Of a DNA stretch of 64,000 nucleotides, positions 10,634 through 49,137 are shown one piece after another. Below the pieces are notes generated by a model, which was not told where the DNA came from, made no database searches, and saw only the letters and a list, made by a program, of their open reading frames with translations. Source of the DNA: Macrostomum lignano (Eukaryota); contig NIVC01002962.1 in NCBI GenBank assembly GCA_002269645.1, positions 1 to 64,000 of the forward strand, written 5' to 3'. The position numbers and the translations under genes were made by a program. Position 1 is the first letter of the stretch. Each line of letters opens with the position of its first letter.

Positions 10634-10654
10634 ACTGAGGACGATGACGAAACA

Positions 10655-10922: not shown

Positions 10923-11160
10923 ACAGACAATCGTCATCAGTTAGTAAGCAGCGTCGTCACTTGCAAGCAGGCATACCATGGGATTTAAATCTTAAGATGA
11001 AATAATATTAACTAAGCAAAAAAATTTAAGGATAAAATAATAATAAGTTAAAGACAAATTTTTTGAAGTAGCTTCAAATTGTTTTTTTTGTATTTAAATT
11101 AAAAACAAAAAAGCTAATTTTTGCTTACGACTTTAGTTTTCGGTTTGTAGTAGGCAGTTC

Positions 11161-21960: not shown

Positions 21961-22231
21961 TAAATACTTAAGTTAAAATTTCAAATGTGCTCTTTTAGGT
22001 GAAAAATTATTAATCAATAAAGCATTTGTTTACGTGCATTGCTTCTACTTAGCTAGGCATATATACAAGCTAATTAAAACCTCACGTATTGAATCTGCTA
22101 GTAAACTGAGCTAACTAGCACAGTAGCGAAGATTTGCTTGATATCTTTGTATTTTCGTTCCAGAGCTCATAAGTCAATCGATATTCTGTCAATCTTTGAA
22201 TAAAACATCAAGTAAGATAAAAAACGTAAAA

Positions 22232-23890: not shown

Positions 23891-24949
23891 ACCATAAATT
23901 TAGCCGTTATTCATGGCTTTATTAGCTTAATTAGCTCGTAGCACGCTGTGTTTTAATAATTTGTGTTTTTACACTTCTGATAAGAAATTATGTAACACAC
24001 GCTTATGCAATTAAAGTAGTCTGTTCATCAAGTCAAGAGCTTCTGTTAACATTTGATTTAATGGAACATTGAATGATTTCGAATCTTTGTTGTCTATAAA
24101 GTTTCGAAGTTGTAAAGATGGGGATATTGTTGTTTTTATTTATTTCTAATTACAGTTTGATTATTTGTTCTTTTTAAGTGATTCAATTGAGTTATACGAG
24201 CCGTATTTATGTTAGTCGTAGCCCGCTATTGTAAATTATACGTTTAAGTGCCCAGGAATAGAAAAAAGGTAGTCGCTGATGTGTAGCTGTCTATACTCAG
24301 CAACATTGGAAAATTGCCATCACAGAAGATTCCGTCTGTGGTCGCCACTTTTCAAAGTGTAGGTAAAGTCTCTCAATCTTGCGAGTGACGCAACTTACAT
24401 GTAGCTACGCCACGCGACAACATTTAGGTTGAGGAATGAAGTGGGGGAATCTCGGTGTGCGAGGATTAGACGGATTAAAGCTACCCCTCAGTTTTATCGT
24501 ATCATTTATTTCAGAATTGTCAAAGATAAATGCTCACTGGTGCATATAGTGACGACTTTTCAATGTTGCTGAGTATACTTAATAGTTATTTATTATTCTA
24601 TACTGGGGTGGGATATTGGGATATTACAGGTTGTAGCTGTTACAGGGGTGTTTATTTATAGTTTAATCCTACTGTTTTGCTACCAAATTGTGACGGGCCT
24701 CTTTTGGGGAAATTATACTGCTGCTGTCTAATTTGTTATAAGGGGGGGGGGCGGGTCGGGGTTACTGGCTTTTACAAGAATTATTTTGGGAATTTCGTAG
24801 GATTTGGGGAGAATATGCAATTTCTACTACTAAAAGGAGTATGCTTTAAAGTTACTCCTGGTGGCGTGAGTGTCCGAGCGGCAAGACACTATATTTCTAC
24901 TCAGTCCGGATATCTAAGGAGGGGAAGGGGAATAAGGGCTTCGCGGTCG

Positions 24950-25290
24950 AAAAATCACATCGTCGAAAAGCATCCACCATCACAAGCTCGAAAAGTCATA
25001 AGCTCGAAAAATCATATCGTCGAAAAGTTTAGCAACCACCATCACAAGCTCGAAAACTCACAAGCTCGAAAACTCACATCGTCGAAAACTGATTTAGCAA
25101 CCACCATCACAAGCTCGAAAAATCATATCGTTGAAAAGTTAAGCAACCACCATCACAAGCTCGAAAAATCACATCGTCGAAAACTGATTTAGCAGCCACC
25201 ATCACAAGCTCGTAAAGTCATAAGCTCGAAAAATCACATCGTCGAAAAGTTTAGCAACCACCATCATAAGCTCAAAAAGTCTTAAAGAAT
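24950..25290. repeat. tandem repeat of ACCACCATCACAAGCTCGAAAAATCACATCGTCGAAAAGTTTAGCA-type units
   Basis: Several imperfect tandem copies; explain ORF 24677..25192. Confidence 0.8.
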
Positions 25291-28162: not shown

Positions 28163-29761
28163 ATGCCGAAAATGTCAAGTGAACAGCAAATCTGCATTGC
28201 TAGATCCTGCGATCGTCCGGCTGAAGACACGAGTCCATACTCTGGTTTTGCTTTCTGTCGGCAGCATCTTGCCACTGAGATTCAGCGTCTAGAGAAACGA
28301 CAACAAGAACTGCTAGATAAGCTTGACAAACTTAGCAACTGTTCAGAAAGACAGGCAATGCGTCTTGGTCAACAAGTTTTGATTGTTGAGATGCAGGAGA
28401 TTACAGACATGTTTGAAGCTGTTCATAATAGACTGCACCAGTGGAAGGATCGGTTGGTGTCGCATGTGCAAAAGATCCATGACAATATTGCTACCACGCT
28501 TAAGGATGTAGACGAGGCCGATGCTTGTAAGCAGGAACTAATGCAGGCTCGGGATTCGGGACAGCTGCGCAAAGTGATGGAGCTTGTTGTTTCCATGGAA
28601 TCATTCGCTGATGACGCTATGGACCGATTGCCAGAGCATGAAGAACTTCGAGCCGAATTGAAGCAAGATGCTCCCAATCGAATCATTGGCGATGTGTCAG
28701 TTGGAGTACAGCAGCTTCAGTTCAAGATCGATCGACATTTCACAGATTTGACACAGCACTGTAAGCTTAAAGACATGCCTTCTGATGACTCACCGCAGTG
28801 CAATGTGTGCAAGTTCGATAGCACTGTCTCCGAGCTTCCAAGTGGACCTCGGTACATAACTTTGTGTCAAAACACGAAAAATTATGCTGCCAACCATACA
28901 GGAGTGATTATTCCTGCTAAACAAGCTGATAAGAGAAGTTTAGAACTGCCAGAACAGTGCTTATTTATAGCATTTGATAGGAACAAGGCGGATTATTTGT
29001 TGGTGATATCACTAAACAGACGTGATTCTATCGATGAGCTAAAGTATCGCTGCGAACAGTTTAACTGGAGCAAGGACATATATGGCATTCATTGCGACAG
29101 CAATCGGCAGCAGCTGTTTATAGCTCAGGATCACGCTGTGACAGTGACAGACCTGTGTGGCCGAATTGTTAGAGTGGTGACTTCTGATCTGTTCGGTTGG
29201 CCTGTTGGAAAGATTTCTGGAATCTCTTGCAACGGAGACAAAGTTTTTGTGCTAGTGTTGGGCAGCCGCAACCAGAAGGTGCATTCATTTAGCAAGAACT
29301 CCGGAAATTTGGAGTCCAGCCTTGATTTAAAAGGCCATTTTGATGGCGACTTGCGCAAAATCTGCCTGCAAGAGAGCAAGATTTGGCTAGCTGATTGGAA
29401 ATACCCGAAAGTTTACAAAGTTTGCGGCATTTCTGGGAAGTTAATTGAAACCATTGATTGCATTGAATCATGTGTTGGTGATATTAAGAAAACGAAATTT
29501 TCGCCAATACACATTTGCACTGATGACAGAGGCCTTTTGTTTGCTAGCCTGATGTCGGCAAATAGCGTAGAAATTTTTGTTGGAGATTCCGTTATTATTA
29601 AGTTTCTGGTAGATTTCAACATCGAAGGCGAAGAAAACGACGACTGCTTTGATCGCCCGGCAGACATGATCATTTTTAACGACGAGACAAAGAACTGCAA
29701 GAAGTTAATAGTTTGCGATTATGCTAACGAGAGGCTCTGTATTTTCTTGCTTTCCACTTAA
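28163..29761 (+). CDS. RING-less TRIM-NHL-like protein, copy 2 (532 aa)
   Basis: Intronless ORF; CIARSC-x15-CRQH, coiled coil, and a C-terminal NHL-like blade FDRPADMIIF...LIVCDYANERLCIF. Confidence 0.88.
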   Translation: MPKMSSEQQICIARSCDRPAEDTSPYSGFAFCRQHLATEIQRLEKRQQELLDKLDKLSNCSERQAMRLGQQVLIVEMQEITDMFEAVHNRLHQWKDRLVSHVQKIHDNIATTLKDVDEADACKQELMQARDSGQLRKVMELVVSMESFADDAMDRLPEHEELRAELKQDAPNRIIGDVSVGVQQLQFKIDRHFTDLTQHCKLKDMPSDDSPQCNVCKFDSTVSELPSGPRYITLCQNTKNYAANHTGVIIPAKQADKRSLELPEQCLFIAFDRNKADYLLVISLNRRDSIDELKYRCEQFNWSKDIYGIHCDSNRQQLFIAQDHAVTVTDLCGRIVRVVTSDLFGWPVGKISGISCNGDKVFVLVLGSRNQKVHSFSKNSGNLESSLDLKGHFDGDLRKICLQESKIWLADWKYPKVYKVCGISGKLIETIDCIESCVGDIKKTKFSPIHICTDDRGLLFASLMSANSVEIFVGDSVIIKFLVDFNIEGEENDDCFDRPADMIIFNDETKNCKKLIVCDYANERLCIFLLST

Positions 29762-32245
29762 ACCGATGGATCAAGCTTAGCTCAAGTAAAGCGGTTATTG
29801 ACCGAAGAATGTGAATATCGTAACTCGTCGTTTGTAACAGTTTTCTCAAAACACATTCTTTTACTTGAAGATATATGTATACCTAATATTTCATTTATAA
29901 ATTTTATAAATATTTATATTAATCTTAATTTTGGTGCTTGCTTATCTTAAATCTTTTTAATTGCAAGCAGAATGTTCAATCGCCATAGCGTACAGAATTT
30001 TTCACGTTTTTTGCTACGCTGCATTTTTACATATCTATTGTACTTTCAGTACCGCATGGCAAGTGTTTGTCGTATTTAACAGTTAAAATTTATTTCTTTA
30101 TTTATTAGTAATCGTTACACATTGTTTTTTGGTTCCAAGTAGCTCGTACTTATACTCAGCAGCAGTCAAAAGTGCTATCCAACTTCCACTTCTCAATTAA
30201 AATTCAACCCACGAGTTTTACGTAACTATGTAGCCAAGTCAAGGGACAGTAACAGGGTAACAGTCTATCTCAATAGAGTGCTTTATTTTTAGTTTTTTTC
30301 GGTAATGTAGGAAAATAGCCAAATCAATTTGCAAAATTACCGATTCGGAGTTACCAAAGACCAAGTTAAGTGCATCATAGTTAATTTAAGTAGCAGAATC
30401 GTTTGGTTCTGTATACTTTTTATGCCCATGTACTCTGCCAAGCGCAGGCAGTCTTCTCTTTGCTCAAGTGCGTCTTTCAATCGCTGCTTAATCCTCAGCG
30501 GATATTCTGGCTCGGGCGGCAGCCATTTACTGTTGAGTTGGCATTGTCCCACCAGGTTTGGCCTTTTGTATCCATCGTTGTCACTGCGCAACAGATTAGC
30601 GCTCTTATTGGCTAATTTACAATTTGAACTGGTGTTTGCACTTGACTTGGTTAGATAATTAACTGGTTTTTGACCTTGCATTGTTATAGTATCCTCAGGA
30701 GAATTTTTATAACAAAAAACATCAGCCCTAAAGGCCAGCTATATCGCCTAAGATATCTGTATCTCCTTTGAGCTTTGGCATCAACGCCTCCCTTTAGGCC
30801 ATTATTTAATCCTATTTCTCCCTTCGATCTACCTTTGGCTTGGCCTACCAAAAACTTCAAAATGAACCTTCTAAATGAAACTTCCAAATATCTCATTAAC
30901 ACTCCCTAAACCGCCACAGCATTTCAGCAATTCCCCCATAAGCTTTGACATGTCAGGGATCCTCCCTGAGAGCCTCAGCAGATTTGGCTATTTGCCAGAT
31001 AAACTGAATTTTATGCATTTGGGATGTGGAACTTAAGTTGGATATAGTACTACGTGACCGAAAATGCCTATAAAGTGTGTACAGTTTTTGTAAGCTATCT
31101 AAAGTGCAAAATTTTCGACTTGCGTGAAGGGTAGCACTAGCACTTTTGACTATTGCTGAATATACGCGCCAGAAAATTCAAGATTTTCTGTCGTTGTGGT
31201 GCTACTAAACTTAAGACACAATAAGTACGTCGTAAAATATTAGACTCATTTACTCGCCATATATTTTTGTAGGGTCCCACCTCGAGAACAAACTCTATGT
31301 GCCTTGCGTCCTATTGTCATGCAACTATATAGTCCATTGTGTAATAATTTACGCATGCTCAACATCTGCATCGTAGCTCTCGTCATTGAGGCACAGTGCT
31401 TTTCGAAAGCTGTAAATCTTACACTGCGTCCCATTGCTAGCCGTGTGTGCAGGCCTAAGTTGTCTCGTCTTGTTTGTGGGGTTGTTTGAAAGGCTCATTT
31501 ACAGGTATATAACTTTAAGTGAGTTGTGCGTACTTTTACGCTTAGAATTCACTCGTAATTAAAATAAAGCAAGTGTATCTTGCTTCTCTTGCTTGTATTT
31601 TTTGTGTGCTTATTATTGTAAAATTAATTCTTTTGGCGCTTTTGCAGCATGTTTAATAATAATTTGATAAGTTTAATACCGAGTGAAAAAGTTTGCTTAA
31701 AAGTTCGGAATGCTTGTGCTTTTATTTTGATTCAACTCCAAACTTCTTTAGCTGTGTATTTCAACATCTAGCTAGGTTATTGCAATATTAAATGAAGTTT
31801 TAGTATATGTTTGCCTTTATAATAGATCGTCCACTGAAAAGTTGCAAAGATTTACTTTGATACCTTAACTAATTGTAGCTCGTATCTAACTGATAGCTAA
31901 ATAGAACTTCCAATGTGTGTACTAAACTTGTGTGCTTCGAACGGTTAAGACCAAAAGGACTAAAAACTGAGAAACTGTTTGTGGCCTATTGCAAGGTCTA
32001 AACTCACTTTAAGACTCTAATGTACGAGCTCGTAGAAGCACGCAGCAGTTCCCTGAAATTGTCTACTAGCTAGCCGCCCTGACCCCTGATCCTTGAGATG
32101 AGATACTCGTAGAGCTAGTAGAGTTGCAGTGTGGTGACAATATAAGATGTCGCCTACTGATTACTTGTACTTGCATTGGTTCAGACTAATTACAGAAAAA
32201 TGATTGAATTTTTGTTTATATGCATGCCGGACGCTAACCGCAGCC

Positions 32246-33883
32246 ATGTCCAGCGATACCCACCGCATGTGCATTGTCAGATCCTGTTACCAAGCGTCTG
32301 ATAGCGTGAGTCCTTATTCCGGATTCGCTCTGTGTCAGCAACATCTTGGTAGCGATCTTGAACGGCTTGAACAGAGAGAAACTGAAGTTTTAAATAAACT
32401 GAATACTGTCGCGGCTAATTCGGAGAAGCAAACTTTTCGACTAGAACAGCAAGCGATTCAAATAGAAATGCAAGAAATTGACGACATGTTTGAATCTGTG
32501 CAGGCGAGGCTCCAGCTGTGGAAAGAGCAGCTGGTTTCCAGTGTCCAACAGATCCACGATGCATTTGCTAGTAGGCTGAGAGATGTCGCCGATGCTGAGC
32601 ATTGTCTGAAAGACATTCATTCGGCACGGTCCAACGGGAAGTTGCGCAAAGTGATGAAGCTAATACTGTCTGTTGAAAGCTTTGCCGATGAAGCCGTCGA
32701 TAGATCGGCAATTTTTGACGACTTTCGAGCAAGGCTTCGTGAAATTACAATGGAACGCGATAAGGATAATGACTCTGATGACGATGATGGTGATGAAGAT
32801 GAAGACGAGTCTTCGAAAACTACTATCTATCGATGCATTGGTGATGTGTCATCTGAGGTGCAGATGCTACAATCACTGATTGACAAGCATATGCATAGTG
32901 TAATGGAGTATTGCCAAATTGACGGCGAATCGCCAGACAAGCCAGTTTGTCCGCCTTTAAAGCAGTCAATTACTCTTCCAGGAGAGCCGCGTTATCTAAC
33001 TCTGTGTACGAACACAAGTGGATACGTGTGCAACATGAATGACTGCGTGGTTTCGCTCAAGTCTGTTGCGAACGCCTCTTATCGAGAATTACCAATGCCT
33101 ACTATCTTTGTTGCGCTAAGGCCAGGTAGCAGTTCTTTACTGCTAGGCGTTTCTTTTAACATGCGTCGCAAGTTTAAACTAATCTGCGAAAAATTCGACT
33201 GGAACAAAGCTATTACTGGTCTTCATTGTGACAATTTGCGTCAGAGATTATTTTTAGCTCAGGAGCACGCAGTGACAGTGACTGATTTGTGCGGCCAAGT
33301 TATCAGAGTAGTTGCTACAAGCCAATTAGGCTTGACTGCAGGACGAATCTCCGGTATGTCCTGCAATGGTGACAAAGTGTTTGTAATTGTGCTGGGAACT
33401 AATCAACAAGTGCTTTCGTTTAGTAAGGCCTCTGGAGTGCTCGAATCCTGCCTCGATGTGAGCGCCTACGGCGAAGGTACATGTGGTCTGCGAAAGCTGT
33501 GTCTGCAAGAGGGCAAGATCTGGCTCGCTGACTGGAAGTCATCGAAGGTGCTAAAAGTTTGCAGCATCACTGGACAGTTGATTTCAACTGCGAAAGGCGA
33601 TTTTCGGTCTTCTATGACGGAAATAATGCCTCTGCACCTAGCAAGCGACGATTATGGTCGACTGTACGTCAGCGAGCTGAAGAATCACAGCGTTCAGTCC
33701 ATTTCAAGCGCAACTGACAATGACGAATTTTTATTTGGAAGTCCAGGCGAAGCGGGTAATAGCGAAGAAGTCTTCAATAGGCCTGCCGATGTTATTGTTT
33801 TCAACAGTGAGGCTGTTGGCTACAAGATTCTAGTCGTAGCTGATACTAACAACATGCGCTTGTGCGCTTTTCGTCTTGTTTAA
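32246..33883 (+). CDS. RING-less TRIM-NHL-like protein, copy 3, with an acidic insertion
   Basis: Intronless ORF, first in-frame ATG at 32246; CIVRSC-x15-CQQH; NHL-like FNRPADVIVF...ILVVADTNNMRLCAF. Confidence 0.88.
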   Translation: MSSDTHRMCIVRSCYQASDSVSPYSGFALCQQHLGSDLERLEQRETEVLNKLNTVAANSEKQTFRLEQQAIQIEMQEIDDMFESVQARLQLWKEQLVSSVQQIHDAFASRLRDVADAEHCLKDIHSARSNGKLRKVMKLILSVESFADEAVDRSAIFDDFRARLREITMERDKDNDSDDDDGDEDEDESSKTTIYRCIGDVSSEVQMLQSLIDKHMHSVMEYCQIDGESPDKPVCPPLKQSITLPGEPRYLTLCTNTSGYVCNMNDCVVSLKSVANASYRELPMPTIFVALRPGSSSLLLGVSFNMRRKFKLICEKFDWNKAITGLHCDNLRQRLFLAQEHAVTVTDLCGQVIRVVATSQLGLTAGRISGMSCNGDKVFVIVLGTNQQVLSFSKASGVLESCLDVSAYGEGTCGLRKLCLQEGKIWLADWKSSKVLKVCSITGQLISTAKGDFRSSMTEIMPLHLASDDYGRLYVSELKNHSVQSISSATDNDEFLFGSPGEAGNSEEVFNRPADVIVFNSEAVGYKILVVADTNNMRLCAFRLV

Positions 33884-34779
33884 ATCGTTGGATCAGTTAA
33901 GCTTTTTCGTCTGGGTGCTTACGAACACTTGCTAAATTTTACATAAAACTTTTCTGATGCGTAGATTTGACGAATTTTACTAACCTAAATTTCTTTGATG
34001 ATTCCTTTTAAAACGTTTTTACTCCTCAATTTTTTCTTTCCTGTTGCTAATATTTTTTTAAATTTCTACTGTTATTAATTTTTAGTCCTGCTTATTAAAC
34101 GATTCTGTTCTACTTGAAGATGGCGAGAAGTTAAGTTTGATGTTGCATTTCTGACCAGATGTTAAAATGTTCTTGCAAATACCTACGATTGTTTTTTTAA
34201 CAATTAGAAATTTCGATTGAATTTTTGTTCCGAATTACTGCTTAAACTTTTCTAGAAACTGACTGGTGCAGATACGAGTATATACGCTATATTTTGCTAT
34301 ACGAGTGTAAATGCAAGATTGTAAGTATTAGTCCAATAATGTGCATTTTTATAATTTATAGAACGTCTCAAACTTGCTTTTAATGTGCAATAAAATATCT
34401 GAAAGTAGATAGCTATAGCTTGTATGCTTTCAAAAATACAGTTGTAATCGTTCTAGTTTATCTAAATAAACTGGCTACTAATTCTTCCTTAAAGGAAAAC
34501 TCGACAAAGATAATTTATTTGGACGTAAAACTGTTTAACTTAATACATCTACTTTAGACGCCCTTAGAGATGTACTTTTGTGATTCAATGGTTTTGTGAT
34601 TCAACACTTTTTTTTCTAAATCATATTATAATAGTGACACAAGAGTGTTATGCCACTAAAGCGGACCACTAAAGTGGGGAAAATTCAGAACCATTTTCCG
34701 ACAGTTGATTCAAAGAGTATATAGGCTAAGAAACTTAGACTACTTTACAAGTTTCACATTGTATTTTTCTACCTCACTC

Positions 34780-36367
34780 ATGAGAAAAATGAAGCGCAAA
34801 TACTGCAGTACAGAAAATCTAAATGAAAATAAATGCTCGTCTAAATTTTGCAACCATCAAGCTATGGGTATGAGTCCACTTACTGGACTGCCATTCTGTG
34901 AACAGCATCTCACAAGTGAACTAGAAAAGGTCAAAAAGCGTCGAACAGATTTATTAGAAAAACTTGAGACCGTCATCGCTGAGTCTGAGAGACGCTCGCT
35001 GCGACTTGAGCAGCAGGCCCTGGCCACAGAGTTGCAGGAGGTCACGGACATGTTCGATGCAGCTCAGGAGCGACTGCAGCAGTGGAGAGACCGGCTGATG
35101 TCGCGTGTGCAGGAGGCGCACGATGCAGTCGCCGAGAGGCTGCGAGACGCGAGCCAAGCAGAAGTGCGCCAAGGAGGTGAAGGATGAGAACTCTCAGGTC
35201 GAGGACTGTGGAAAGCTGTTTGCCTCAGTAGAGTCGTGGCTCGACGAGGCCTGCAGTCGGTCAGAGAAGTTCAGCCAGCAACGAGACGAGCTGCGCGATC
35301 GGCAGAGCCGTCAGCTGGACGATCAGGCAGCAGCAGGTACTATTTTGCGGTGTGTGGGAGACGTAGCAGCAGGTGTTGAGCAGCTGCAGTTCGAGATCGA
35401 CAGACATCTGACAGGTGTGATGCGGCAGTGCTGGCTCGATGACAGAGAGGCGTCTCCTGTGCTCCGGCCTTCGGGCTCGATCTCGCATCTGCCGAGCGGT
35501 CCTCGGTATCTGGCCCTGTGCAGCAACACTCGGGGCTTCGCAGCCGACCCGTCGGGTCGCATAGTTCGAATCGACGCTTCGAATGAGGCGTGCGAGCCTC
35601 TGCCTGAACTTTGCGTCATTGTGGCATTCCATATAAATTCAGTTGAATATCTACAAATGATTTCACTTGATGGAGGCCTTCGACTTCCATGCGAGATTGA
35701 CTTGGATTGGAATAGTTTTATATATGGTGTCCGGTGTGACAATATTCGCCAAAATTTGTATGTAGCGCAAGGCGAAGTGGTTAGTGTCGCCGATTTGTCT
35801 GGTCGTATGCTTCGCCAGATCAGGGATACTGAAATTGCTGAAGCTAACTGCGTTATCTGCTCAATCGATTGTAACTCAGATAAACTATTTGTCCTGACAA
35901 CAACTCCGAATCGACTGGTTGGTTTTAACAAGGATTCTTGGGAGATTGAACTGTCAGTCGATATTGATTCCGTATGCCCTTCAAGCGGGGTTCACAAGTT
36001 ATCAATTGTTAACTGCAAGGCTATTTTATCTTATCAGGGTTGCTCTCGAGTTCTTCGAGTCTGTTGCATAACTGGTCAGCTATTAATGTCGTATCCAGTT
36101 GATTATCGCCTTATTAAAAAGATTCGTCGACCTATGCAAGTTGCTTTTAATAGGCGCGGCCTCCTGTTTGTGAATGAGAACCGCCAATTTGTTCGAGTTT
36201 TGACTAACGATGGAGTTTGTCTACAAGTTCTGTGTAGACCAGATGGTCTAGGCAGACAGCAGTTTAATTGTGCGATGGGTGTCCTAGTCTGCACTGAGAC
36301 CAGTCCGAACGTGCTTCTTGTTGCCGATTCTGTTGATGAGAAGCTGTATGTGTTTGATATCGTTTAA
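34780..36367 (+). pseudogene. RING-less TRIM-NHL-like copy 4 with a 2-nt deletion frameshift at about 35164 (pseudogene or assembly error)
   Basis: ORFs 34705..35187 and 35105..36367 join into one paralogue. Copy 4 reads GCAGAAGTGCGCC where copy 5 reads GCAGAAGAGTGCGCC and copy 6 GCAGAGGAGTGCGCC; no other lesion seen. Confidence 0.75.
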
Positions 36368-37953
36368 AACTTTTGTAATGTTTCAGTTTTTACAATGTAG
36401 TGAGGGTATGGAGCTAAAAATCGACAATTTTCTTATCTAGAGCGATATCCTTAGGTTTTGTGTGAAAAATTCAACATCTATGCTAAAACACATGTGACAA
36501 CAAGGAGATGGCTACTAACTTTTCAATCTAAACTGACGTAGCTACCAAACCAATTTTTCATAGAAATTGCATAGAAACTGCCCAGTCCAGGAAGTGTCCG
36601 AGTATGCGTCATGCTTGCTTGCTCGTACTTACATATACTTGACTTGGCCCGTGCCGTGAGCAGTCCTGACTCCACTTACGAAGTTACATACAAGAGTGTA
36701 GAAATACGTTAAGAAAATTAAACGCAACCTTTGCTCTGATTTTATGATTTTTAACTTTGAGTATCTTCTTTAAGATTCACAAGTTAGCAAACAGCATTAC
36801 CCATTTCGCTCCACCTGCCTTTTAATGTATCTTCCTTGGACCAATACTTTCAATACGACTGTAAATTGATTTTATATTTTAATAGCATGCGATAAAAATT
36901 TTTGTTCGCTGTAGTGTGAGCAATGATATTTTTTGTACGGTACACACTATTTTGTAAGTAGGTGGGAATCTTCCAAGTTCCAATATTGCAACAAATGTTC
37001 GTTTTAAATGTATTCAGACAAATTTTCGGCTCTAAAATCTGATGCCTGTGTGTAAATTGATTTGCTAAGTTCTTTTTTTAAGTAGCGTGCAAAAGGCAGC
37101 ATTATCAATCTATTTCTATTGGTGTACTACGAGTACAAATAAAAAGTGTATTCAGCATTCATCGCTCAGCTTCTACGATCAAGTAACGCAATAGTTATTC
37201 CTATTCTATTTGATTTGTCTTTTTCGTTTTCTAGCTTATTATACAGGATTTAGTTTAAACTTGGACTTTAAAAATATTTCTTTAATTTTTTAGGATGAAG
37301 TTGTAGAAATTATTTGCTTTATTCAATCATAAACTGTATGAGCTATGCTATAAAATAGTTTTTCAGTGCTGCCCTAATTTTTACCAGTCATTTCAAAGAA
37401 TCAAGTAAAACAAATTCCCTCAATTTTAAGAACGCGCTGTTATTTAATTATTTTGCATTTTTCATAACAGTTCCTAAACTAACGCATAAGTTATTTATCA
37501 CCAAAACTTTAAAGTTTTTTGTCACAACCTTTTGAATACTGCCTCGTTCTACTGTTTAGTTTTGCTACAGTACAAACAAACGAAACTTGCATGAAACGAT
37601 CGTCGTTCAGGAAAACGGGTGGGCTATATTAAAATTTGTGCATGTAATCATTCGCTTAAAAGTAACTTCCAATTTGATAAACCCTGGCGTAGCTAGGCCA
37701 TAATAATTATTATAAAAACCGTCTCTAAACAAAAAACAATCTGATACGACCTATCTACATTAAAAAAAGCATTTTTGTTTAGGAATGAGTCGGATTACGG
37801 GCAAATATGCATGTATTTTTGCTCTTTAGGCCAAATTAGTTGATTTTTTGGTTGCCATTTTTATTGCTTCATTTTTTAGTCTAAATAATGCATTTAAGAA
37901 AACAAATACAAGTTAAAAACGTTATAAAATCCCTTTCTGACCAAAAAGAAAGA

Positions 37954-39537
37954 ATGACCTCAACCGCCGACTCCACCGAATGCTGCTCGTCAAAATTCTG
38001 TGGTCAGACGGCAGCCGGTGTAGGCAGGCTCACCTGTCTGCCTTTCTGTGAGAAACATCTTCAGGTTGACATGAAAAGACTGGAAAAGCGGAAAACAGAT
38101 CTGCTTGAGAGACTTAAGACCGTCATCTCTGAGTCTGAAAGACGCTCGCTCCGACTGGAGCAGCAGGCCCTGGCCACAGAGTTGCAGGAGGTCGCGTACG
38201 TGTTCGATGCAGCTCAGGAGCGACTGCAGCAGTGGAGAGACCGGCTGATGTCGCGTGTCCAAGAGGTGCATGATGCAGTCGCCGAGAGGCTGCAAGACGC
38301 GAGCCAAGCAGAAGAGTGCGCCAAGGAGGTGAAGGATGAGAACTCTCAGGTCGAGGACTGTGGAAAGCTGTTTGCCTCAGTAGAGTCGTGGCTCGACGAG
38401 GCCTGCAGTCGGTCAGAGAAGTTCAGCCAGCAACGAGTCGAGCTGCGCAATCGGCAGAGCCGTCAGCTGGACGATCAGGCAGCAGCAGGTAATGTTTTCC
38501 GGTGTCTGGGAGACGTAGCAGCAGGTGTTGAGCCGCTGCAGTTCGAGATCGACAGACATCTGACAGGTGTGATGCGGCAGTGCTGGCTCGATGACAGAGA
38601 GGCGTCTTCCGTGCTCCGGCCTTCGGGCTCGATCTCGCATCTGCCGAGCGGTCCTCGGTACCTGGCGCTGTGCAGCAACACTCGGGGCTTCGCAGCCGAC
38701 CCGTCGGGTCGCATAGTTCGAGCCGACGCTTCGACTGAGGCGTGCGAGCCCCTACCGGATGTGTGTGTCATTGCTAGTTTTGAGCTAAATACTGTAGCTT
38801 ATTTACTACTAATTTCACTTAAGTCCGATGTTCGACTTCGCTGCGAGACCAATTTGAATTGGGCCCGCCGTATTTACGGGCTTCAGTGTGACAGCAAGCG
38901 GCAGCATGTGTACGTTGCGCAGGCTCAAGCTGTGACCGTGATCGACCTGTCTGGTACCGTGATTCGCAGTGTCAGCAAAGCCGATTTTGTTAGCACTGTT
39001 GGTCCAATCCGATCCATTTATTCCAGCTCAGACAAATTGTTTGTATTGGCTACTGACCCCTATCGATTATTTTGCTTCTGCAAAGATTCGTGGCAATGCG
39101 AGCTGTTGACTGATTTTTCTGAACTGACTTCTGGTTGCATGGTCAGCAGTTTTTCAGTTCATGGTAGCAAAATTCTTTTGTGCGATAGAACTTGCGGTCG
39201 GATTCTACGAGTGTGCGGAATCAGCGGTCAGCTACTAAAGTCATATACCCTATCTGGTGAAGTTGTTGACAGTTTTTACCGCACACTGCATCTAGCACTG
39301 AGCAACTGTGGCCTGTTATTTGTTAGCGATCTAAAACATCACGTTGTAAAAGTTATGAAGTCCAGCGGGCCACTTATTCAGACAGTCGGTACTCCGGGTC
39401 AGTGCGGTCAAGTAATAAATCATCAGTTTAATGGGCCTGCCGGTATTGTTATTACCGGTGACACGAGCTCGAATCAACTTTTTGTGGCTGATTCAAACAA
39501 CAAAAGAGTTTGCATTTTTGAGCTTACGTTTATGTGA
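37954..39537 (+). CDS. RING-less TRIM-NHL-like protein, copy 5
   Basis: Intronless ORF (upstream in-frame ATG at 37888); CSSKFC-x15-CEKH; NHL-like GTPGQCGQVINHQFNGPAGIVITGDTSSNQLFVADSNNKRVCIF. Confidence 0.88.
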   Translation: MTSTADSTECCSSKFCGQTAAGVGRLTCLPFCEKHLQVDMKRLEKRKTDLLERLKTVISESERRSLRLEQQALATELQEVAYVFDAAQERLQQWRDRLMSRVQEVHDAVAERLQDASQAEECAKEVKDENSQVEDCGKLFASVESWLDEACSRSEKFSQQRVELRNRQSRQLDDQAAAGNVFRCLGDVAAGVEPLQFEIDRHLTGVMRQCWLDDREASSVLRPSGSISHLPSGPRYLALCSNTRGFAADPSGRIVRADASTEACEPLPDVCVIASFELNTVAYLLLISLKSDVRLRCETNLNWARRIYGLQCDSKRQHVYVAQAQAVTVIDLSGTVIRSVSKADFVSTVGPIRSIYSSSDKLFVLATDPYRLFCFCKDSWQCELLTDFSELTSGCMVSSFSVHGSKILLCDRTCGRILRVCGISGQLLKSYTLSGEVVDSFYRTLHLALSNCGLLFVSDLKHHVVKVMKSSGPLIQTVGTPGQCGQVINHQFNGPAGIVITGDTSSNQLFVADSNNKRVCIFELTFM

Positions 39538-40241
39538 CTTAACTTGAAGACTTAAAGCAATTTATTTTGCCGCTGTTTGATAGATCAGCAACAAAGGTGC
39601 TCTTGACCTTGCGCTTTCTAGTTGAGAGCTGTGTACAATGTACAGGGTGTCAGAACGCCCACCCTATTTATACATTGCAGCTTCTAACTGCTTGCCCTAT
39701 TACATTAGGGCGAACTCAAGCCCTGCTGCAATTGTGATGTCCTTATTCAAGCGCCTGGAAAAGTTTGTTAATTTTAAGAAGTCTACTGAGATTTAGAATA
39801 TAAGAATCTGTATTCACTATGTACATTATGTTTTGTATTGAACAAATTTATTTTCATTATTCTTGCATTATTAAGCAAATGCAAATTCTCAAATTAAAAA
39901 ACTACAAGTAAGGTAGCTTTTGATAGTCTTTTGTATACCGTCTTTGTTGTCTATTTATCGATTTGTACGAGTGTAGTTGTTTAAAGTACATTGAACTTCG
40001 GTGCTGCAAGACAGGCATTCCATCTAGAGTAGCAATAAGAAATATTGTACGTACACTGGAATTGTTAAAGCAGAACATTTTTTTTTAAAACTACTTAACT
40101 GTTTCCGTTTAGTTTAAATTTCCTAGGCTTTACATTTTAACTACTGTCTACAAGATTATTTGTATGTTTGCTTCTTTCGTACGGTAATCACACATCTAAT
40201 CATATACATGTATTTCTCACGTTTCATGTGACAGATTCAGT

Positions 40242-41858
40242 ATGGAGCCAGAATCCGACAGCTCCTGTGCTGAAAACTTTGAAAGCTGTACATCAAAGTT
40301 CTGCAATCAACGGGTAACGTCGCTCTGCCCACTCACTGGCTTGGGATTCTGTGAGCAGCATTTCAGCGTTGAAATAAAGAAGCTGGAAAGGAGGAAGACG
40401 GATGTTCTAAAGAGACTCGATACGGTCATCTCTGAATCTGAAAGACGCTCGCTGCGACTGGAGCAGCAGGCCCTGGCCACAGAGTTGCAGGAGGTCGCGG
40501 ACATGTTCGATGCGGCTCAGGAGCGACTCCAGCAGTGGAGAGACCGGCTGATGTCGCGTGTCCAAGAGGTGCACGATGCAGTCGCCGAGAGGCTGCAAGA
40601 CGCGAGCCAAGCAGAGGAGTGCGCCAAGGAGTTGGAAGAGAAATGCAACGATAGATTTTGCAATAAAGACAGCGTAAAGCTTATCGTCTCCCTAGAGTCG
40701 TGGCTAGATGAGGCCTGCAGTCGATCGGAGAAGTTCAGCCAGCAACGAGTCGAGCTGCGCGATCGGCAGAGCCGTCAGTTGGACGATCAGGCAGCAGCAG
40801 GTACTGTTTTCCGGTGTGTGGGAGACGTAACAGCAGGTGTTGAGCAGCTGCAGTTCGAGATCGACAGACATCTGACAGGTGTGATGCGGCAGTGCTGGCT
40901 CGATGACAGAGAGGCGTCTCCTGTGCTCCGGCCTTCGGGCTCAATCTCGGATCTGCCGAGCAGTCCTCGGTACCTGGCGCTGTGCAGCAACACTCGGGGC
41001 TTCGCAGCCGACCCGTCGGGTCGCATAGTTCGAATCGACGCTTCGACTGAGGCGTGCGAGCCCCTACCGGATGTGTGTGTTGCTGTGTCGCTTACTGAAA
41101 AGGATGTTGAATATATTCTCCTCATGTCGCTAGATGGTAGCATTCGTTTTCGATGCCAAAGCGAGCTGGATTGGAGCAGCCGAATATTTGGTCTTCAGTG
41201 TGACAGCAGTCGTCAGCAGTTGTATGTCGCCCAGGCTAATGCAGTGACAGCGATAGATTTGTCGGGTCAGGTTGTTCATCTCATTACGAGGTCGGATTGC
41301 GGTGAAGTATTCGGCACCATTTGCTCGGTAGACTGCTCTTTGGATAAAATATTTATTCTCAGTGAAAAACCTTACTGTTTAGTTGCTTTTAGCAAAGATT
41401 CGTTTGAGTGTGAGCTAAATGTAGACATTTCTCCATTCAGTACTGTTGATGGCGTCCGCAAAGTATCACTTCAAGGTCATAAAGCGCTTCTTTGCAACCA
41501 AATCAGCGGTCAGTTGATGCGAATTTGCTGCATCACTGGTCAGCTCATAATGGCTTATCCTGTCAAATCAAATTATCAAGAAAGATTTTTTAATCCGCAG
41601 CAAGTACTTTTCAATGGTCGTGGCCTGCTGCTTTTTTCTGACTCTCACTGCGTCCGAATCATGGCCCATAATGGAGCCATCCAGCAAACTCTAGGGACTC
41701 CGACTGAACCTGGTTGTGGCGATCTGCAGTTTAAATCCCCTATAGGTACATGTATCGTGACTACAGAAAAGACGAATCCTCACAAACTTTTCTTTGCTGA
41801 TTTGGAGAACCTAAGAATTTGTGTTTTTGAATTGTATAATCCTATACTTCCATCTTAG
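40242..41858 (+). CDS. RING-less TRIM-NHL-like protein, copy 6 (538 aa)
   Basis: Intronless ORF; CTSKFC-x15-CEQH; NHL-like GCGDLQFKSPIG...LFFADLENLRICVF. Confidence 0.88.
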   Translation: MEPESDSSCAENFESCTSKFCNQRVTSLCPLTGLGFCEQHFSVEIKKLERRKTDVLKRLDTVISESERRSLRLEQQALATELQEVADMFDAAQERLQQWRDRLMSRVQEVHDAVAERLQDASQAEECAKELEEKCNDRFCNKDSVKLIVSLESWLDEACSRSEKFSQQRVELRDRQSRQLDDQAAAGTVFRCVGDVTAGVEQLQFEIDRHLTGVMRQCWLDDREASPVLRPSGSISDLPSSPRYLALCSNTRGFAADPSGRIVRIDASTEACEPLPDVCVAVSLTEKDVEYILLMSLDGSIRFRCQSELDWSSRIFGLQCDSSRQQLYVAQANAVTAIDLSGQVVHLITRSDCGEVFGTICSVDCSLDKIFILSEKPYCLVAFSKDSFECELNVDISPFSTVDGVRKVSLQGHKALLCNQISGQLMRICCITGQLIMAYPVKSNYQERFFNPQQVLFNGRGLLLFSDSHCVRIMAHNGAIQQTLGTPTEPGCGDLQFKSPIGTCIVTTEKTNPHKLFFADLENLRICVFELYNPILPS

Positions 41859-44585
41859 GAATACGTCGAAAAGCATTAGTTTATCGACGCCTAGTTGCTT
41901 TAGCTTTGTTTGTTAGTGTTTGAAGTCTAGCTTTACACTGTATACTCGTACTTTTATTAAACCTAAATATGATACTTGTACTTCGAAGCAGTGCCCTGCT
42001 GTTCCTTGACTCTGGTTGTTGTTTTTTTATTCACATTATCTGCTTCTAAGTTTAGTCCGCCAAAAATATCTAATTAGCGAAGATACTAAACAAACAAAAC
42101 AGTACTTGCGATTCTGAAAAAGATATTTAAGGCGGAATGGTTAATAAAAAGACGACTGAATGATTAATTGTTAATCGTTTATAAAAAGTATTTTGTTATA
42201 ACAAGTTAAACACACTTATTTTGATAAAAATTGTCGAACCAAGCGCCATCTGAGTGCCATTAAAAGCGCGCGAGTATGATAATTTCTGAACTTGTTTTTA
42301 GAAAACCACAGCTAACTTTCTTTAAATCTTCCAGCTAAGCGTCATGTACATCCTGGCCTATTCTATGTTGAAATATCCTTTGAATTTTACTAATAGGTTT
42401 CATTAATACCAATTCAGGCATTATATCATTATTGTTGATTTTTAGTATGAGTCGAAATCATAAGCTGCTGTATCTTGCGTTTGCTATGCATACTTGCTTA
42501 TTTACGAGCGTATTTGTTTTTTTTGTTGATCGAAAACTGTATTTTTCGCTCTTTTAGAATTAGACTATACTAACTATGGGGGGTAACCTAATAATTAAGC
42601 GTTTCCTATTTATTTTTGTTTGCTAATTAATCTTGTGTAAATTTTAATTATGGGCCCGATTTGTTAGTTTTGATTGCTACAGTACATGCTTCTATTACTG
42701 TAGCATTTAAATACATTGTGACGGGGGACTTGTGGAAAACTTCATTGTTTTACTATCATTTTTACTATTAGTAGACTACTACATAAGTGTATCATATTTT
42801 GTATGAATTCTGTGTACATTCATTGAATCGGCTTTTATATGTCGGCAAGTGATGAATTTTTAAAAAATCAATAATTTTGCCCAGCGCCCATCGTAACTCT
42901 CAGCCAATTACAATTCGCTGTATCATCTATCGTTTTATATTAACTGTTCGTTTTTCGTCGCTACTCTAAATAAAATAAAATAAACTTGGCCAACTAAGCA
43001 AGCAAAATATATCAATTCAATTGAATATTGGACTGCGCTATACTTGCATTTTTCTTCGGTCTTGTTCTGCCAAGGACTGCCAGATTAAATTGTCACAACA
43101 TATATGATTTCAACGTACGTTTTTTCACATTTTTACTGTGCACTCAAGTGCTATTACAAAGATATAGTCACTTACATGGCAGTTACATGTAAGTTTTTGC
43201 TTTGTTTAACTTTTTTACTAAACAGTTAGATAAAAATGTGCACGTACAGTTCAGTCCAGATCGATCTTGGCTCGCGCGTCCGCTCTGCAGCTTTTACCTG
43301 GGCTTCACGCTCGTACATGTAGCTATAACTCAATTCTTACCTAATTCATGCCACAGAACGACTAAATAAATAGAAATACAAGGATCATATTAAAGGATCT
43401 GAATAGGGCCGCATATATCAAATAAGCCCGCAGAAAGCACTCAGATTTTGATTGATACATCGACCTACATGTAGATTGATACGCGTACTTTTCAACTATA
43501 CAGCTGCATAAAAATGGACCAGGAAGGTGATTTAATGTGAACTTATACCGTGCCCACAACTACTGAGGAAAAAACAGCATTCTTTCTGTTTAATTACTCG
43601 TGTACATGTACAATATAAACAGCTAGTAGTTAAAGTCTGCAGAGCTCTGCTCAGTGCTTACGGTCCCAATGCCTAAATGAGTGTTAACATCACCGATTCC
43701 ATTAAAAGTGTAGGAATGGGAATAGGAATAGGACTAGTAATAAGGAATTTAGTCAGAATTATTGCTTAATCAATTATTGCACAGCTCCCCACTGCATTTA
43801 CATGATCCATGCATATGGCGACGCCAAATGATGGAGCTGAGTATTTGTTACTCGCCACACTGCACCTCACCGATCGCGTACATTATACATGTGTAAGCAC
43901 CACTGCAGTGGCAGTTTTAAAAACATTACGGTAATGCCGCCATTTTCATGCAGTTAGCACTACAAATACTCTGACATTGAAACTTATTTGATAGTATTGT
44001 AATTTTACAAGTCGAAATTAATTATTATTGCTAGTATTATAATGCATGAGTATTCTAAATGTCAAACTCTAAAGTTGGTTTACAAAATTACTGTTTTGTT
44101 AAAGTTTGTTTTTTCTTTAAGGGGTTTTTAATTTTCTTTATTTCTTATAAAATCGTGTTTCCTGTAAAGCGTTAGCAAGTGAATAGGGTAGGAAAGAATT
44201 GGAGTAGTGCACATTGTGCTTGCGCAAGCAGTGTATTTGTATTATAGGCTTCTTGTCGGGATAATTTAATTTGCCTATAAAAACTCTTTATTTGACCTAT
44301 CTAGTCTATTGTTTACCGAGTAAATTAATTAGGACATACACCGACACCGAGTCACCGACTTACTACCTATATTGAACTTGAATGAACATTAGGCCTAATT
44401 AAAATAGTAAAATATTCAATAAATCCCATATACTTAATCAAACGTAACGACGAACGGGATAATTTAAGCTGCACCTTAAATTTTTGGCTTGGTGTTTTCA
44501 GTTCTAGGATGGTTTTGTAGGATGAGTTTTTCTTTGTGACCAGTGACCACTGACCACCCAGTTAAAAGCCTTTCTGACTAGTCTA

Positions 44586-47500
44586 ATGCCTGAGCAAGTT
44601 GTTCGAATTGGTGTGACAGATTTTGTCACATATACATATGAAGATTTGCAGGATGCAACCAACAGTAGATTCATTCAAAAAATATTACAACTAAGGAAAA
44701 CTGTGGATTCAATTTCTTATGTATGTCAATTTTTTTATTGCCTAATTTTTTATATACAACCCATTTTACCTTTTTGACTATTGCCTAAGCAATAAATAGG
44801 GCCCTATCTTTTTATGACAGTATGACATGAATCCTTATTAATATTCGGCTAGAGCCTAGGTATGTTACAAATTTGAATATCAAAAGAATATGCTATTATA
44901 TGCCTGGATGGAATTCTTGCAGAAAAATCACAACGCGTTATGCAATTGAGCGAAAAAAATGCGATTTTGCATAAAAAAATCCAGAAAAAATGTGTTGCAG
45001 AATTTCAGACAAAATTTCTAATTCTTAATATATGCAAAAGTGCGCTTGAGATATTGGATTTTGCAAAAGATAATCTTACCAGCTAATATCACAAAGAAAA
45101 ATAAAAAGTAAAAACTAAATAAGGCACAAAAGTAAAAATTAAAAAAAAATTCTATAAAAAGTAGAAACTCGTAACATTCTCTAACATTCATATTTGGACA
45201 AAAATTCAAATTACTACATTATCTTAGAATGCATTTTTCATTATTGTCTTTCGTTATTTTGTTATTTCGTTATTTTGCGATGTGCTAAGTACCAAAATAA
45301 AAAATGCGACCAATAAAAAATATTTTGCGTGCCATAAAAAATCGCATAATTCCATTTGACTTAAGAAATACAAGAATTCCATCCTGGCTTATATGCTTAT
45401 TTTATTATACGCAATTTTGAATTTTTCAAAAAAAGAATTCTTGCATAAAAGTTATTATGCCTCTATGTGTGCTTTCAAATTTGTCTACAGGTGTATGTTG
45501 AAAATGGGCCTACCTGCTTGCATACTTTAAAAATATATATATAGTACTTATGTACATTTGTACAAAAAGCTATTTGCTACATAATTATAATGCATAGGCC
45601 TACAATACAGTTATAGTAATAGTAGCTTCTATATTTCTTCAGTTTACCTTGTGCTCTTGATTGTTTACTTTCTTATGAAATTTAGTCTAGACTTCTCTCT
45701 CTCCCTATTTTCATTCTGATTAGTTTTCACTTTAACTTCCTAGCCTTTTCTATCCTTTTATTCCATTTGTATAGCTAGCCCCCTTCTTTTTGTATGCTCA
45801 AATTAAAAGCCAACTTCTCAGTTCTTAATGCCCTAAACCCTAATTACTTACTTTTATTTTTAACCAAAATGTCAATATTCAAATCTTAATCTATTTTAAA
45901 TCTTTACCCTACATCAAAGTGACTAATTAATATTTCAATTATCAATTTCCAATTCTAATTCAAATTATATATTCTATTCTTAACATTAACTAGAGATGTT
46001 CCAAAATTTTGATTTAAATTTAAATTTTCTAAAATTTGCATTTTTAAAGCAAATTTTAATTTCTAAATAATTTGGAAATCAAAATTTTAGAAGTGCCTAC
46101 TTCCAAACTTCTTATCTGATGTTAGTTTTTTTAGAACTTTGTTACTGCTTTCATTAGTGATATTATTACATTTTTTACATGTAAAACTATTTGAATTTGT
46201 TAAAACTGTTCCATACATATAGAACATACATATAGGGCCGTATGCAGAAAGCTCTGTCTAGGGTAGTCCGGTCTTGAAAAGCTAGTCTGGACTTGGATTT
46301 GGTATGCAGAAATGCAAAGTTAGACCGGTCTACTATAGCAGAACTAGGGTAGCTGGACCATAGACTATAGACTGAACTACCCAAGTCTGGACTAGCTAGT
46401 CTAGACTAAGCTTTCTGCATACGACCCATAGTTTGTGGAACTGTAAATTTTTCAATTCTAATTCAAATTATATATTCTATTCTTGACATTAACTAGAGAT
46501 GTTCTAAAATTTCCATTTAAATTTAAATTTTCTAAAAGTTGCATTTTTGAAGCAAATTTTAATTTCTAAAGAATTTGGAAATCAAAATTTTAGAAGTGCC
46601 TACTTCCAAACTTCTTATCTGATGTTAGTTTTTTTAGAACTTCATTACTGCTTTTATTGGTGATATTATTACATTTTTTACATGTAAAACTATTTGAATT
46701 TGTTAAAACTGTTCCATACATATAGAACATACATATAGTTTGTGGAACTAAATTTTTGTAAATTTTGTTGCACTTTAAAGCTGTAAAAGCATCTGCTGAT
46801 ATATTGCACATTTTTGCATAATACAATACAATAATGCATATGTACATTTACCATACATGTACATGCATTATTGTTTACACAATCTCAGTTTATTGCTAGT
46901 CATGCAGTGATACATGTATATTTTAACTAAATTTTATACATGTACAACTGAGTACACGTAGTTTTTGCATTGAAAAAAGTTTTTGCATTTAAAGTGGCAA
47001 TGAGGGATTCTACTTATTTAGTGGCTAAAAAAAACTAACTTCTGCTAAACATACATATATTTTGTTTTGCATGAGCAGTAAATTTAAAGTAAAAAAGTGA
47101 GTGTTGGTTGTACTAAACTTTGTTTTTCTGAATTTTGATTTCAACTATATAGCTGCAGTATTAATTAATTATTTAAAATTGTATTAATTTGACAAATAAA
47201 TAAAATACAACTTAAGAAAAGAAAATTAAGCAATTATTTATACCTATTAAGAAGATAGTATAAAGGGGTTCTATAGTGCCAGCTGGTTATTAGGGATTGC
47301 TAATTGAGTTTGTTGATAGATGGGACCTAGTGCTATAGTATAGTTAGTCTATAGTGCTGTGGGTGATATTGCTAGTATATGTATCTTAGCTACACAAATG
47401 ATCTGATTGGATAGCTGTCTATGAGCCCATGTTGGCATAGTGTAGATTGGTTTTTTATAAGATATTATGTCATTTTTGGGAACAGTAAGGCTGCTAATGG

Positions 47501-48908
47501 GTTAGCTACATTTATTATATAATAGCAACAGCAATGCAATGAGATTAAGAAGTAATGATAGTAGATAGTGGATAATAGTGCTTTCAGGCATCTCTATTAA
47601 TAGCATAAAAGCATGTAAAACATTCACAAAGAGGCTGCTCAACATCTCATTGGACTATTTGTGGAAGGGTTTTTGTTGGTTAGTGAATAAGAGCAAGGCA
47701 ATGGTTCTTTTAGTAGGATAATTAATGGAAATTAGATTGGGGATTCAAACAAAGAAAAAGAAGAGGCATGATTTGTATCATTGTCATCATCACCATATAT
47801 TTATAGATTTGTAAATGGTTTCTAGAGTTTTCTAGAAAGATTGAATGCATCCTAACAAACTAGTTTTGACTTTTAGAAATCTAACGAAATTTTGAAAAAG
47901 TTATTAAAGTATGATATAGTAGCAGTATTCATAGAATATTTACTATGTACTAACAAGGCATTTAGGAACAATAGTCTATAATTTCTCAGTAATATTGAGT
48001 ATCTATTTATTTATTAATATAAATAAGAGCTTATCTAAGCCATATAATAATAGGCTCTTAGCATAAAAAATGTTTGCTAAACAAATATTAAAAAATAAAA
48101 TAATTTAATTATTGCCATTAGTATTTTTTGTCCATTTTTTAAATCTTGTTATTCTGTTTGAATATATAAAGTATATATAAATTTCAAAACTGTACACAGA
48201 ATCTTGTTTCAAGCACAAAGAATTGTTATTTGAGCAAATAAAAATCTAAGTTATTTTAACTGGACTCTAAGCTACAATACTATATAACCTCCTGAGTAAA
48301 TAGTCTTGTCTTCTCTGAACTTTGTCATGCTAATAAATATTTTTATAATTTAATTTTTGTTTTAATACCAAGGGTAAGATGATAGTGTATCATCTTTAAC
48401 ATGTATATATATACTCTTAACAGATTCTAAAATAGTATTTCCTCAATTCAAGACAAAAAATTCAAAGTAGAATACAAACAAAATACAAATTTTAAATAAA
48501 AAATACCTCTCATTAATAGGACTTGGACTTAGACAAAGCAGCACTGAACAAGGTTCGCAAATCAGTGAAAGCTGTTTATGGATCTGGAAAATGTAAGTTA
48601 TATTTTGTAATTTAACTACTGGCATTATTTCTCGCATAGTAACACTTGCACCCCTGTCTTGCACCTGCAGCGCACATTCAAAGCGAAAGCGATCTGTCTA
48701 ATTTGCTAGCCGAGCTGGGCAACTATGCCATCGACGAGGGCGCCGACTCTGTTGGCAGCGCGCTGTCCAAATTCTCTGTTGTTACCAAGGAAACGAATTC
48801 TTATTTTGCTAATTTGGTATGCTCTGCTGCTGGCGGTTGATGTCACTTTTTTAGTGTTTCTTAGATGGATATATATATAGATAGATAGATAGAAGGATAG
48901 ATAGATAA

Positions 48909-48958
<50 letters not shown>

Positions 48959-48964
48959 TGATAA

Positions 48965-49033
<69 letters not shown>

Positions 49034-49080
49034 AGGATTAGAAGGGTAGATAGATAGATGGATGGATAGATAGATAGATG

Positions 49081-49137
<57 letters not shown>

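Follow-up and report, generated by a model that had tools for sequence, protein, structure and literature searches.

The 64,000-nucleotide stretch analysed here (the window) comprises positions 1–64,000 of contig NIVC01002962.1 from the flatworm Macrostomum lignano (assembly GCA_002269645.1) and carries six intronless open reading frames (ORFs) in tandem on the plus strand, named c1 to c6, each of which encodes a small Cys/His finger, a coiled coil and an NHL β-propeller. We found that an internal tract of 630–650 bp is nearly identical in c4, c5 and c6, while the finger and propeller regions on either side of it are saturated with silent differences. With high confidence we attribute this pattern to recurrent short interlocus gene conversion, which keeps the tract uniform in otherwise old tandem duplicates, with edges that are probably limited by the remaining homology and a base composition probably shaped by GC-biased repair.

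A nearly identical tract within three diverged paralogs

Tract edges were obtained from a two-rate breakpoint fit on the pairwise alignments of c4, c5 and c6 (Table 1). They lie within a few bases of the intervals proposed in a first-pass annotation of this DNA (34968–35598, 38118–38768 and 40422–41080), which had also described identity above 90% including third codon positions and an abrupt loss of identity at both ends, and the fit bears out both descriptions. Identity among c4–c6 is 92–96% within the tract and about 55% in the flanks (45–65% in sliding windows), with mismatches inside versus outside amounting to 4.1% versus 46% for c4/c5, 8.1% versus 44% for c4/c6 and 7.7% versus 45% for c5/c6. 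The breakpoints are discrete (twice the log-likelihood difference, 2ΔlnL, of 261–396 across the three pairs), and the longest exact common runs measure 141, 112 and 73 bp, whereas in column shuffles they averaged 19 and never exceeded 45. A blastn search with the c5 tract returned only the c4–c6 copies, at 91–95%. At the 3′ edge the pairs differ: c4 departs at 35598, and c5 and c6 remain identical for another 18 bp. Over the entire tract, identity of c6 is only about 92% because a 61-bp diverged island lies inside it; there, the proportion of synonymous differences (pS) is 0.67–0.69 between c6 and c4 or c5, and 0 between c4 and c5. Within the island, positions 40638–40670 encode KCNDRFCNK, a C-x4-FC motif resembling the start of the N-terminal finger of c6 (CTSKFCNQ), which may be coincidence.

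Equal synonymous divergence in tract and propellers, named in the first-pass annotation as what would speak against conversion, is not what we observed. Synonymous divergence (dS) between c4, c5 and c6 is 0.069–0.094 in the tract and 2.1–2.4 in the propeller, and in the 5′ part pS reaches 0.77–0.82 with dS undefined; silent divergence is at least 25-fold lower in the tract than in its flanks. Furthermore, blastn revealed no homology between the intergenic regions of the copies. Given this lack of intergenic homology and the saturated flanks, the genes duplicated long ago, and recent ancestry is confined to the tract.

All six proteins can be aligned over their full length, which allows the corresponding segment of c1–c3 to be inspected. 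It is 45–75% identical to the tract with saturated pS, and has diverged like the rest of the gene. Copy c1 shows 30–70% nucleotide identity to c4–c6 throughout and a GC content at third codon positions (GC3) of 0.41 in this segment, and c2 has a GC3 of 0.44 and a pS of 0.78 to c5. As a DNA sequence, the segment is under no general constraint, and this bears directly on the idea that the tract owes its conservation not to copying but to purifying selection at the level of DNA or RNA (through an overlapping antisense gene, RNA structure or a regulatory element). Antisense ORFs of 105–202 aa do overlap the tracts, yet they vary in position and length by copy (35323–35931, 37990–38307 and 40787–41143), as expected of stop-poor GC-rich DNA. 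An Rfam scan of 34000–42500 gave no match, which counts against a structured RNA, and selection of this kind cannot yield the variants, described below, that paralogs have in common against orthology. We give such constraint next to no credence.

The tract also stands out by its composition, in agreement with the first-pass annotation, which had seen it as GC-richer than its flanks. GC is 0.61–0.62 in the tract, 0.42–0.45 in the propellers, 0.36–0.51 in the 5′ parts and 0.31–0.34 in the AT-rich DNA between the copies, and GC3 is 0.68–0.70 in the tract against 0.37–0.43 in the propellers and 0.41–0.44 in the same segment of c1–c3. This step coincides with the tract edges and extends to codon positions 1 and 2 (GC12 of 0.58 versus 0.46). 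At the protein level, the counts of residues G, A, R and P (GARP) and of residues F, Y, M, I, N and K (FYMINK) are 55–58 and 17–18 in the tract versus 34–39 and 36–43 in the same segment of c1–c3.

Table 1. Positions in the window of the six paralogs, the homogenised tracts and the island in copy 6.
Feature	Position	Strand	Description and basis
Paralog c1	22196–23890	+	Finger, coiled coil, degenerate propeller; outside the homogenised group; ORF list and alignment
Paralog c2	28163–29761	+	Not homogenised; ORF list and alignment
Paralog c3	32204–33883	+	ATG at 32267; not homogenised; Pfam NHL E=8e-6; GC3 0.43 in tract-equivalent segment
Paralog c4	34705–36367	+	Split into two ORFs within the window by a 2-bp deletion after 35162
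Paralog c5	37888–39537	+	549 aa; Pfam NHL E=2e-5; AlphaFold2 (AF2) model
Paralog c6	40242–41858	+	538 aa; ORF list and alignment
Conversion tract, copy 4	34967–35598	+	Breakpoint fit; dS 0.07–0.09 to c5/c6; GC3 0.68–0.70
Conversion tract, copy 5	38117–38768	+	Residues 77–294; breakpoint fit, by pair 38117/38122–38750/38768
Conversion tract, copy 6	40425–41080	+	Two blocks around old island; breakpoint fit, by pair 40425–41062/41080
Unconverted island in copy 6	40632–40692	+	61 bp with 9-bp insertion; diverged from c4/c5 like flanks; kept in homeolog

Variant mosaic between homeologous contigs

The M. lignano line DV1 has three subgenomes with single-nucleotide polymorphism differences of about 1.9–2.4% (PMC10733133). 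A homeologous array on contig NIVC01000168.1 (L001) is collinear with the window and 95–98% identical to it, and it holds three tracts with the same edges and an intact c4 (9977–11587). We compared c4, c5 and c6 from the window with those from L001. In the flanks, the sequences group strictly by ortholog, with differences of 0–2% between orthologs versus 42–51% between paralogs. Within the tract, orthologs are 2.5–3.0% apart, and many paralog pairs only 2.7–4.6% outside the island. Sorted by site, the tract outside the island holds 12 paralog-fixed positions, 24 singletons and 19 positions that contradict orthology, as against 257 paralog-fixed and no contradicting positions in the flanks. The contradicting sites cluster in short runs, at least six of which are differently patterned. 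At 38259/38262/38294 and at 38754/38757, c5 of L001 has the c4 states; at 38722–38723, c6 of the window has the c4 states and c6 of L001 the c5 states; and at 38226, 38415 and 38638, c4 equals c5 within each contig while the contigs differ. Such short and differently patterned runs indicate several conversion events, each well under 200 bp, after the contigs or subgenomes had split. Conversion at this locus is recurrent, short-tract and later than the subgenome split. Orthologs have also diverged further in the tract than in the coding flanks (2.8% versus 1.3%, Fisher p=4e-4). Altogether, the silent-site contrast, the sharp breakpoints, the lack of intergenic homology and the cross-contig mosaic give good support to the recurrent interlocus gene conversion that the first-pass annotation had proposed.

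A single recent replacement, in which one donor, possibly external, was copied into the other two copies with no ongoing exchange, would fit one aspect of these data: the tract dS between paralogs (0.07–0.09) is somewhat larger than that between homeologs (0.046), as for an event shortly before the subgenome split. Invasion of a 45% diverged target is, however, implausible without prior homology, and one event does not agree with the differently patterned runs, some of whose sites are equal within a contig but different between contigs, with 3′ edges that vary by pair, or with c4 and c5 being equal at silent sites across the island where c6 is old. Searches for an external donor among predicted proteins, using full-length c5, the family profile and the tract peptide, found only models of this locus or its homeolog, although an unannotated donor would escape them; other loci of the family are only 66–71% identical to the tract, over 120–200 bp. 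A one-off replacement is thus, in our judgement, very unlikely.

The assembly itself deserves equal scrutiny, as the tract could be a collapsed or chimeric consensus, or could have been homogenised by short-read polishing, with the real copies differing there as they do elsewhere. The assembly is redundant and difficult, with 36% of its length in scaffolds chimeric between subgenomes (PMC10733133); it was built from PacBio long reads and Pilon-polished with short genomic and RNA-seq reads, which are multi-mappable (PMC5730564), and the gene models at the locus are visibly confused. Against this, two independently assembled homeologous contigs show three tracts each with the same edges and with private variants per copy (the 24 singletons), and both preserve the c6 island. 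The tract is about 650 bp long with unique sequence on both sides in a PacBio long-read assembly. Polishing, moreover, fixes single bases and small indels; it can neither reduce divergence from 45% to 4% across 650 bp between sharp edges nor lift GC3 to 0.7. We therefore consider an artefact extremely improbable.

Probable mechanism, tract edges and a possible role of selection

We propose that c1–c6 are old tandem duplicates of a finger/coiled-coil/NHL family expanded in Macrostomum, and that repeated short non-allelic conversions among c4, c5 and c6 have maintained 630–650 bp in a homogeneous state while finger, propeller and intergenic DNA drifted to saturation. The sharp edges may be mainly mechanical: conversion needs local homology, a diverged flank would no longer be invadable, and the stretch open to conversion could become shorter but not longer. 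On this view, the 61-bp island in c6 would represent sequence that conversion no longer reaches. GC-biased repair of the heteroduplex would raise the GC content of the tract, and such GC-biased gene conversion (gBGC) appears to be the best explanation for its GC richness, including the effect on amino acids. Private mutations in the tract, polarised by majority, comprise 15 strong-to-weak (S>W) versus 3 weak-to-strong (W>S) changes. These describe an AT-biased input and not the fixation bias itself; they indicate that mutation erodes a GC content which something else maintains, a combination that GC-biased conversion is expected to produce.

Several observations weigh against this proposal. 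In a site list inspected by eye, the shared W/S polymorphisms in the tract show no clear excess of GC alleles, and substitutions are not polarisable for a W>S fixation bias, the outgroup copies c1–c3 being saturated. The coiled-coil core is mildly GC3-rich (57–67%) even in a singleton member of the family. With regard to conversion itself, a Sawyer-type test for the longest concordant run with three sequences is significant only for c4/c5 and c5/c6; the result for c4/c6 (p=0.93) is uninformative, since the variable sites of the tract are mostly private. Of the three copies, c4 and c6 show a significant excess in ortholog divergence; in c5 it is not significant (p=0.31). Finally, the fine mosaic comes from two contigs of one assembly, and multi-mapping polishing reads could have moved variants among 95%-identical tracts, a caveat of which the existence of the tract is independent.

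The position of the edges can be related to the protein by means of an AlphaFold model of c5 (mean predicted local distance difference test score, pLDDT, of 64). The model shows a small finger (pLDDT ~76 in this region), helices at residues 55–151, 158–199 and 210–231 (of low confidence beyond residue 130), a disordered linker and ~25 strands from residue 256 onwards. The first-pass annotation had described the tract as covering only the coiled coil and linker. This holds in so far as most of the long-helix region lies inside; yet the tract leaves out some 22 residues at the beginning of the long helix, which starts at residue 55, and takes in three confidently predicted propeller strands (256–262, 268–270 and 275–278, pLDDT 75–85). 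Since the start of the helix is omitted, three strands are included and the 3′ edge lies 18 bp apart between pairs, the edges do not track domain borders. They probably reflect loss of homology rather than selection.

A second tandem array, with three members of the family (d1–d3), is present on NIVC01000805.1 (L007 10001–18350). There, d1 and d3 share 88–93% nucleotide identity along some 120 bp within the same coiled-coil core, with a pS of 0.18 versus 0.6–1.0 elsewhere and a GC3 of 0.60–0.73. This dip in divergence resembles a tract in the same place that is shorter or in decay, and agrees with the notion that exchange persists longest where the gene is best conserved and homology still suffices.

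The first-pass annotation had also inferred that a uniform dimerisation module could allow combinatorial heterodimers. In an adaptive version of this idea, selection might have retained those conversions that favour mixed c4–c6 dimers with two different propellers, while conversions reaching finger or propeller were purged for the sake of diversity. In TRIM proteins, such a long-helix region forms an antiparallel dimerisation module. The tract covers most of the corresponding region predicted for c5, the highest identity in the second array falls into the same coiled-coil core, and the c4–c6 propellers differ by 36–38% at nonsynonymous sites, all of which would suit this adaptive scenario. On the other hand, the tract edges ignore domain borders, and the ratio of nonsynonymous to synonymous divergence (dN/dS) between homeologs is 0.42–0.64 in the tract, no lower than in the propellers (0.12–0.41). 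The dN/dS of 0.20–0.25 between propellers gives no sign of diversifying selection, with dS being saturated. In addition, c4 of the window is frameshifted inside the tract, by a 2-bp deletion (GCAGA--AGTGC) that results in ORFs 34705–35187 and 35105–36367 and is either a genuine pseudogenising mutation or an error left in the assembly, and one haplotype, described below, lacks c4–c6 altogether. Strong selection on the coiled-coil module is unsupported by the dN/dS values, the c4 frameshift and this haplotype. We regard the adaptive scenario as unlikely. Decidedly unlikely, too, is the derived functional model, in which the uniform coiled coil would be selected and c4–c6 (and, more weakly, the second array) would form combinatorial heterodimers with one common dimerisation module and different NHL propellers. 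Homology-limited conversion remains our preferred explanation for the extent of the tract.

The gene family and its counterparts

Pfam detects only C-terminal NHL repeats in the paralogs, with matches in c3 and c5 that pass the curated cut-off (Table 1). Searched against the PDB, a profile built from the six sequences matched Thin, TRIM71, TRIM2 and TRIM3 in their NHL domains (E=1e-12 to 3e-7), and Foldseek with the c5 model retrieved the NHL propellers of TRIM2, TRIM3, Thin and Mei-P26 (target template-modelling scores, TM-scores, of 0.64–0.68). Near the N-terminus, four ligand-like residues are invariant in all six proteins (C33, C38, C54 and H57 in c5 numbering), following the pattern C-x4-C-x15-C-x2-H. 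Isolated N-termini and fingers gave no Pfam match to zf-B_box or any other family even at E<=10. No Pfam match to a RING was found either, and in all six copies the alignable sequence starts a short way upstream of the finger and is preceded by nothing that resembles a RING.

The proteins thus share with TRIM-NHL proteins (TRIM2, TRIM3, TRIM32/Thin, TRIM71/LIN-41, Brat and Mei-P26) the homologous C-terminal six-bladed NHL propeller, a long helical region preceding it and a zinc-finger-like motif N-terminal to the helices. Unlike them, c1–c6 have neither RING nor filamin domain, their finger fits no Pfam B-box, and the Macrostomum genes are intronless and organised in lineage-expanded tandem arrays. 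Having no RING and no recognisable B-box, c1–c6 are TRIM-NHL-like rather than strict TRIM-NHL proteins. With relatives counted at the 50% cluster level, an exhaustive profile search yielded some two dozen of full length, and those that could be located are all from M. lignano. In our literature searches, we came across no previous description of this finger/coiled-coil/NHL family or of gene conversion in Macrostomum; the genes form a previously undescribed flatworm family.

The haplotype without c4–c6 is represented by NIVC01004991.1 and NIVC01002156.1, which are 99.3–99.8% identical to the window and lack 33290–41816 (8.5 kb), so that the end of c3 and the whole of c4–c6 are missing. At the junction (L003 15103–15108 and L006 3611–3616 in our locus numbering), the c3 propeller, truncated at 33289, is joined to the last 42 bp of c6 by an ATTTG(TG) microhomology and a 4-nt filler. 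This is probably the third subgenome version of the locus. The 524-aa protein of c2 starting at 28187 is identical on three contigs. Divergence between window and L001 is itself uneven: upstream, c2–c4 are 98.4% identical, while between window 41375–44900 and L001 16300–20660 divergence rises abruptly from about 1–3% to 10–26% within the final 480 bp of c6 and remains at 12–15% downstream, a mosaic of divergence levels between subgenomes. By the genes called in the assembly, the array lies between an AIRS/AIRS_C-domain gene upstream (18187–20404) and an ASAP-like ArfGAP (BAR, PH, ArfGap, Ank, SH3) downstream (44586–51858). Tandem repeats occur at 18741–19159 (a 33-bp unit repeated 12.8 times with 92% match, encoding 11-residue protein repeats if read on the minus strand), upstream of c1 (24/46/70-bp, 21635–21943) and between c1 and c2 (49–111-bp, 24947–25285).

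The deposited annotation of the locus is wrong because of the tract. The models switch paralog inside it, P0001 from c4 to c5 (L001 10001–14504), P0002 from c4 to c6 (window 35123–41858), leaving c4 at or before 35341 and entering c6 at or after 40752, and the UniRef entry P0013, labelled 'Myosin heavy chain', from c5 to c6; in the window, c5 has no gene model of its own. We rejected a reading of P0001 and P0002 as genuine 4/5 and 4/6 fusion genes born from unequal crossover, as their gene ranges span 4.5 and 6.7 kb for proteins of 533 and 423 aa and both contigs carry c4, c5 and c6. Most simply, the chimeric models are spliced alignments across identical sequence. With an annotation confused in this way, expression or knock-down work needs probes outside the tract.

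As a process, domain-limited gene conversion with its partial concerted evolution and GC signature is already known; the gene family is new. Domain-restricted gene conversion was reportedly described for the variable exons of clustered protocadherins by Noonan and colleagues in Genome Research in 2004. There, too, the genes are tandem single-exon paralogs in which one coding part is homogenised, with raised third-position GC, while the part that determines specificity diverges. Protein family, phylum and function are different, however, and here the coiled coil and the first propeller strands are homogenised, in only three of the six copies. GC-biased gene conversion in multigene families such as mammalian histones and Hsp70 is said to have been reported by Galtier in 2003 and by Kudla and colleagues in 2004. 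Those concerted paralogs likewise have a much higher GC3 than unconverted relatives or flanks, and new mutations are AT-biased; whole genes are converted there, whereas here an internal tract has a composition step at both edges. The CYP21A2/CYP21A1P cluster is a case of conversion involving a pseudogene. Similarly, c4 of the window is a frameshifted copy in an exchanging group with its lesion inside the exchanged segment, so that it could donate or receive the lesion, although the 2-bp deletion, possibly an assembly error, is not seen transferred to c5 or c6.

In summary, our study provides a well-delimited example of partial concerted evolution, for which the public assembly offers three subgenome versions of the locus, two with tracts and one deletion, and hence a built-in time scale of 1–3% divergence. 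Their comparison shows that conversion is ongoing and acts on short tracts. If the heterodimer model were true, conversion would keep dimer partners compatible, and the family would parallel, in a flatworm, the division into shared interface and variable specificity known from clustered protocadherins. If GC-biased conversion causes the composition step, the locus would provide direct evidence of gBGC in a flatworm, strong enough in its effect to reshape the amino-acid composition of the encoded proteins.

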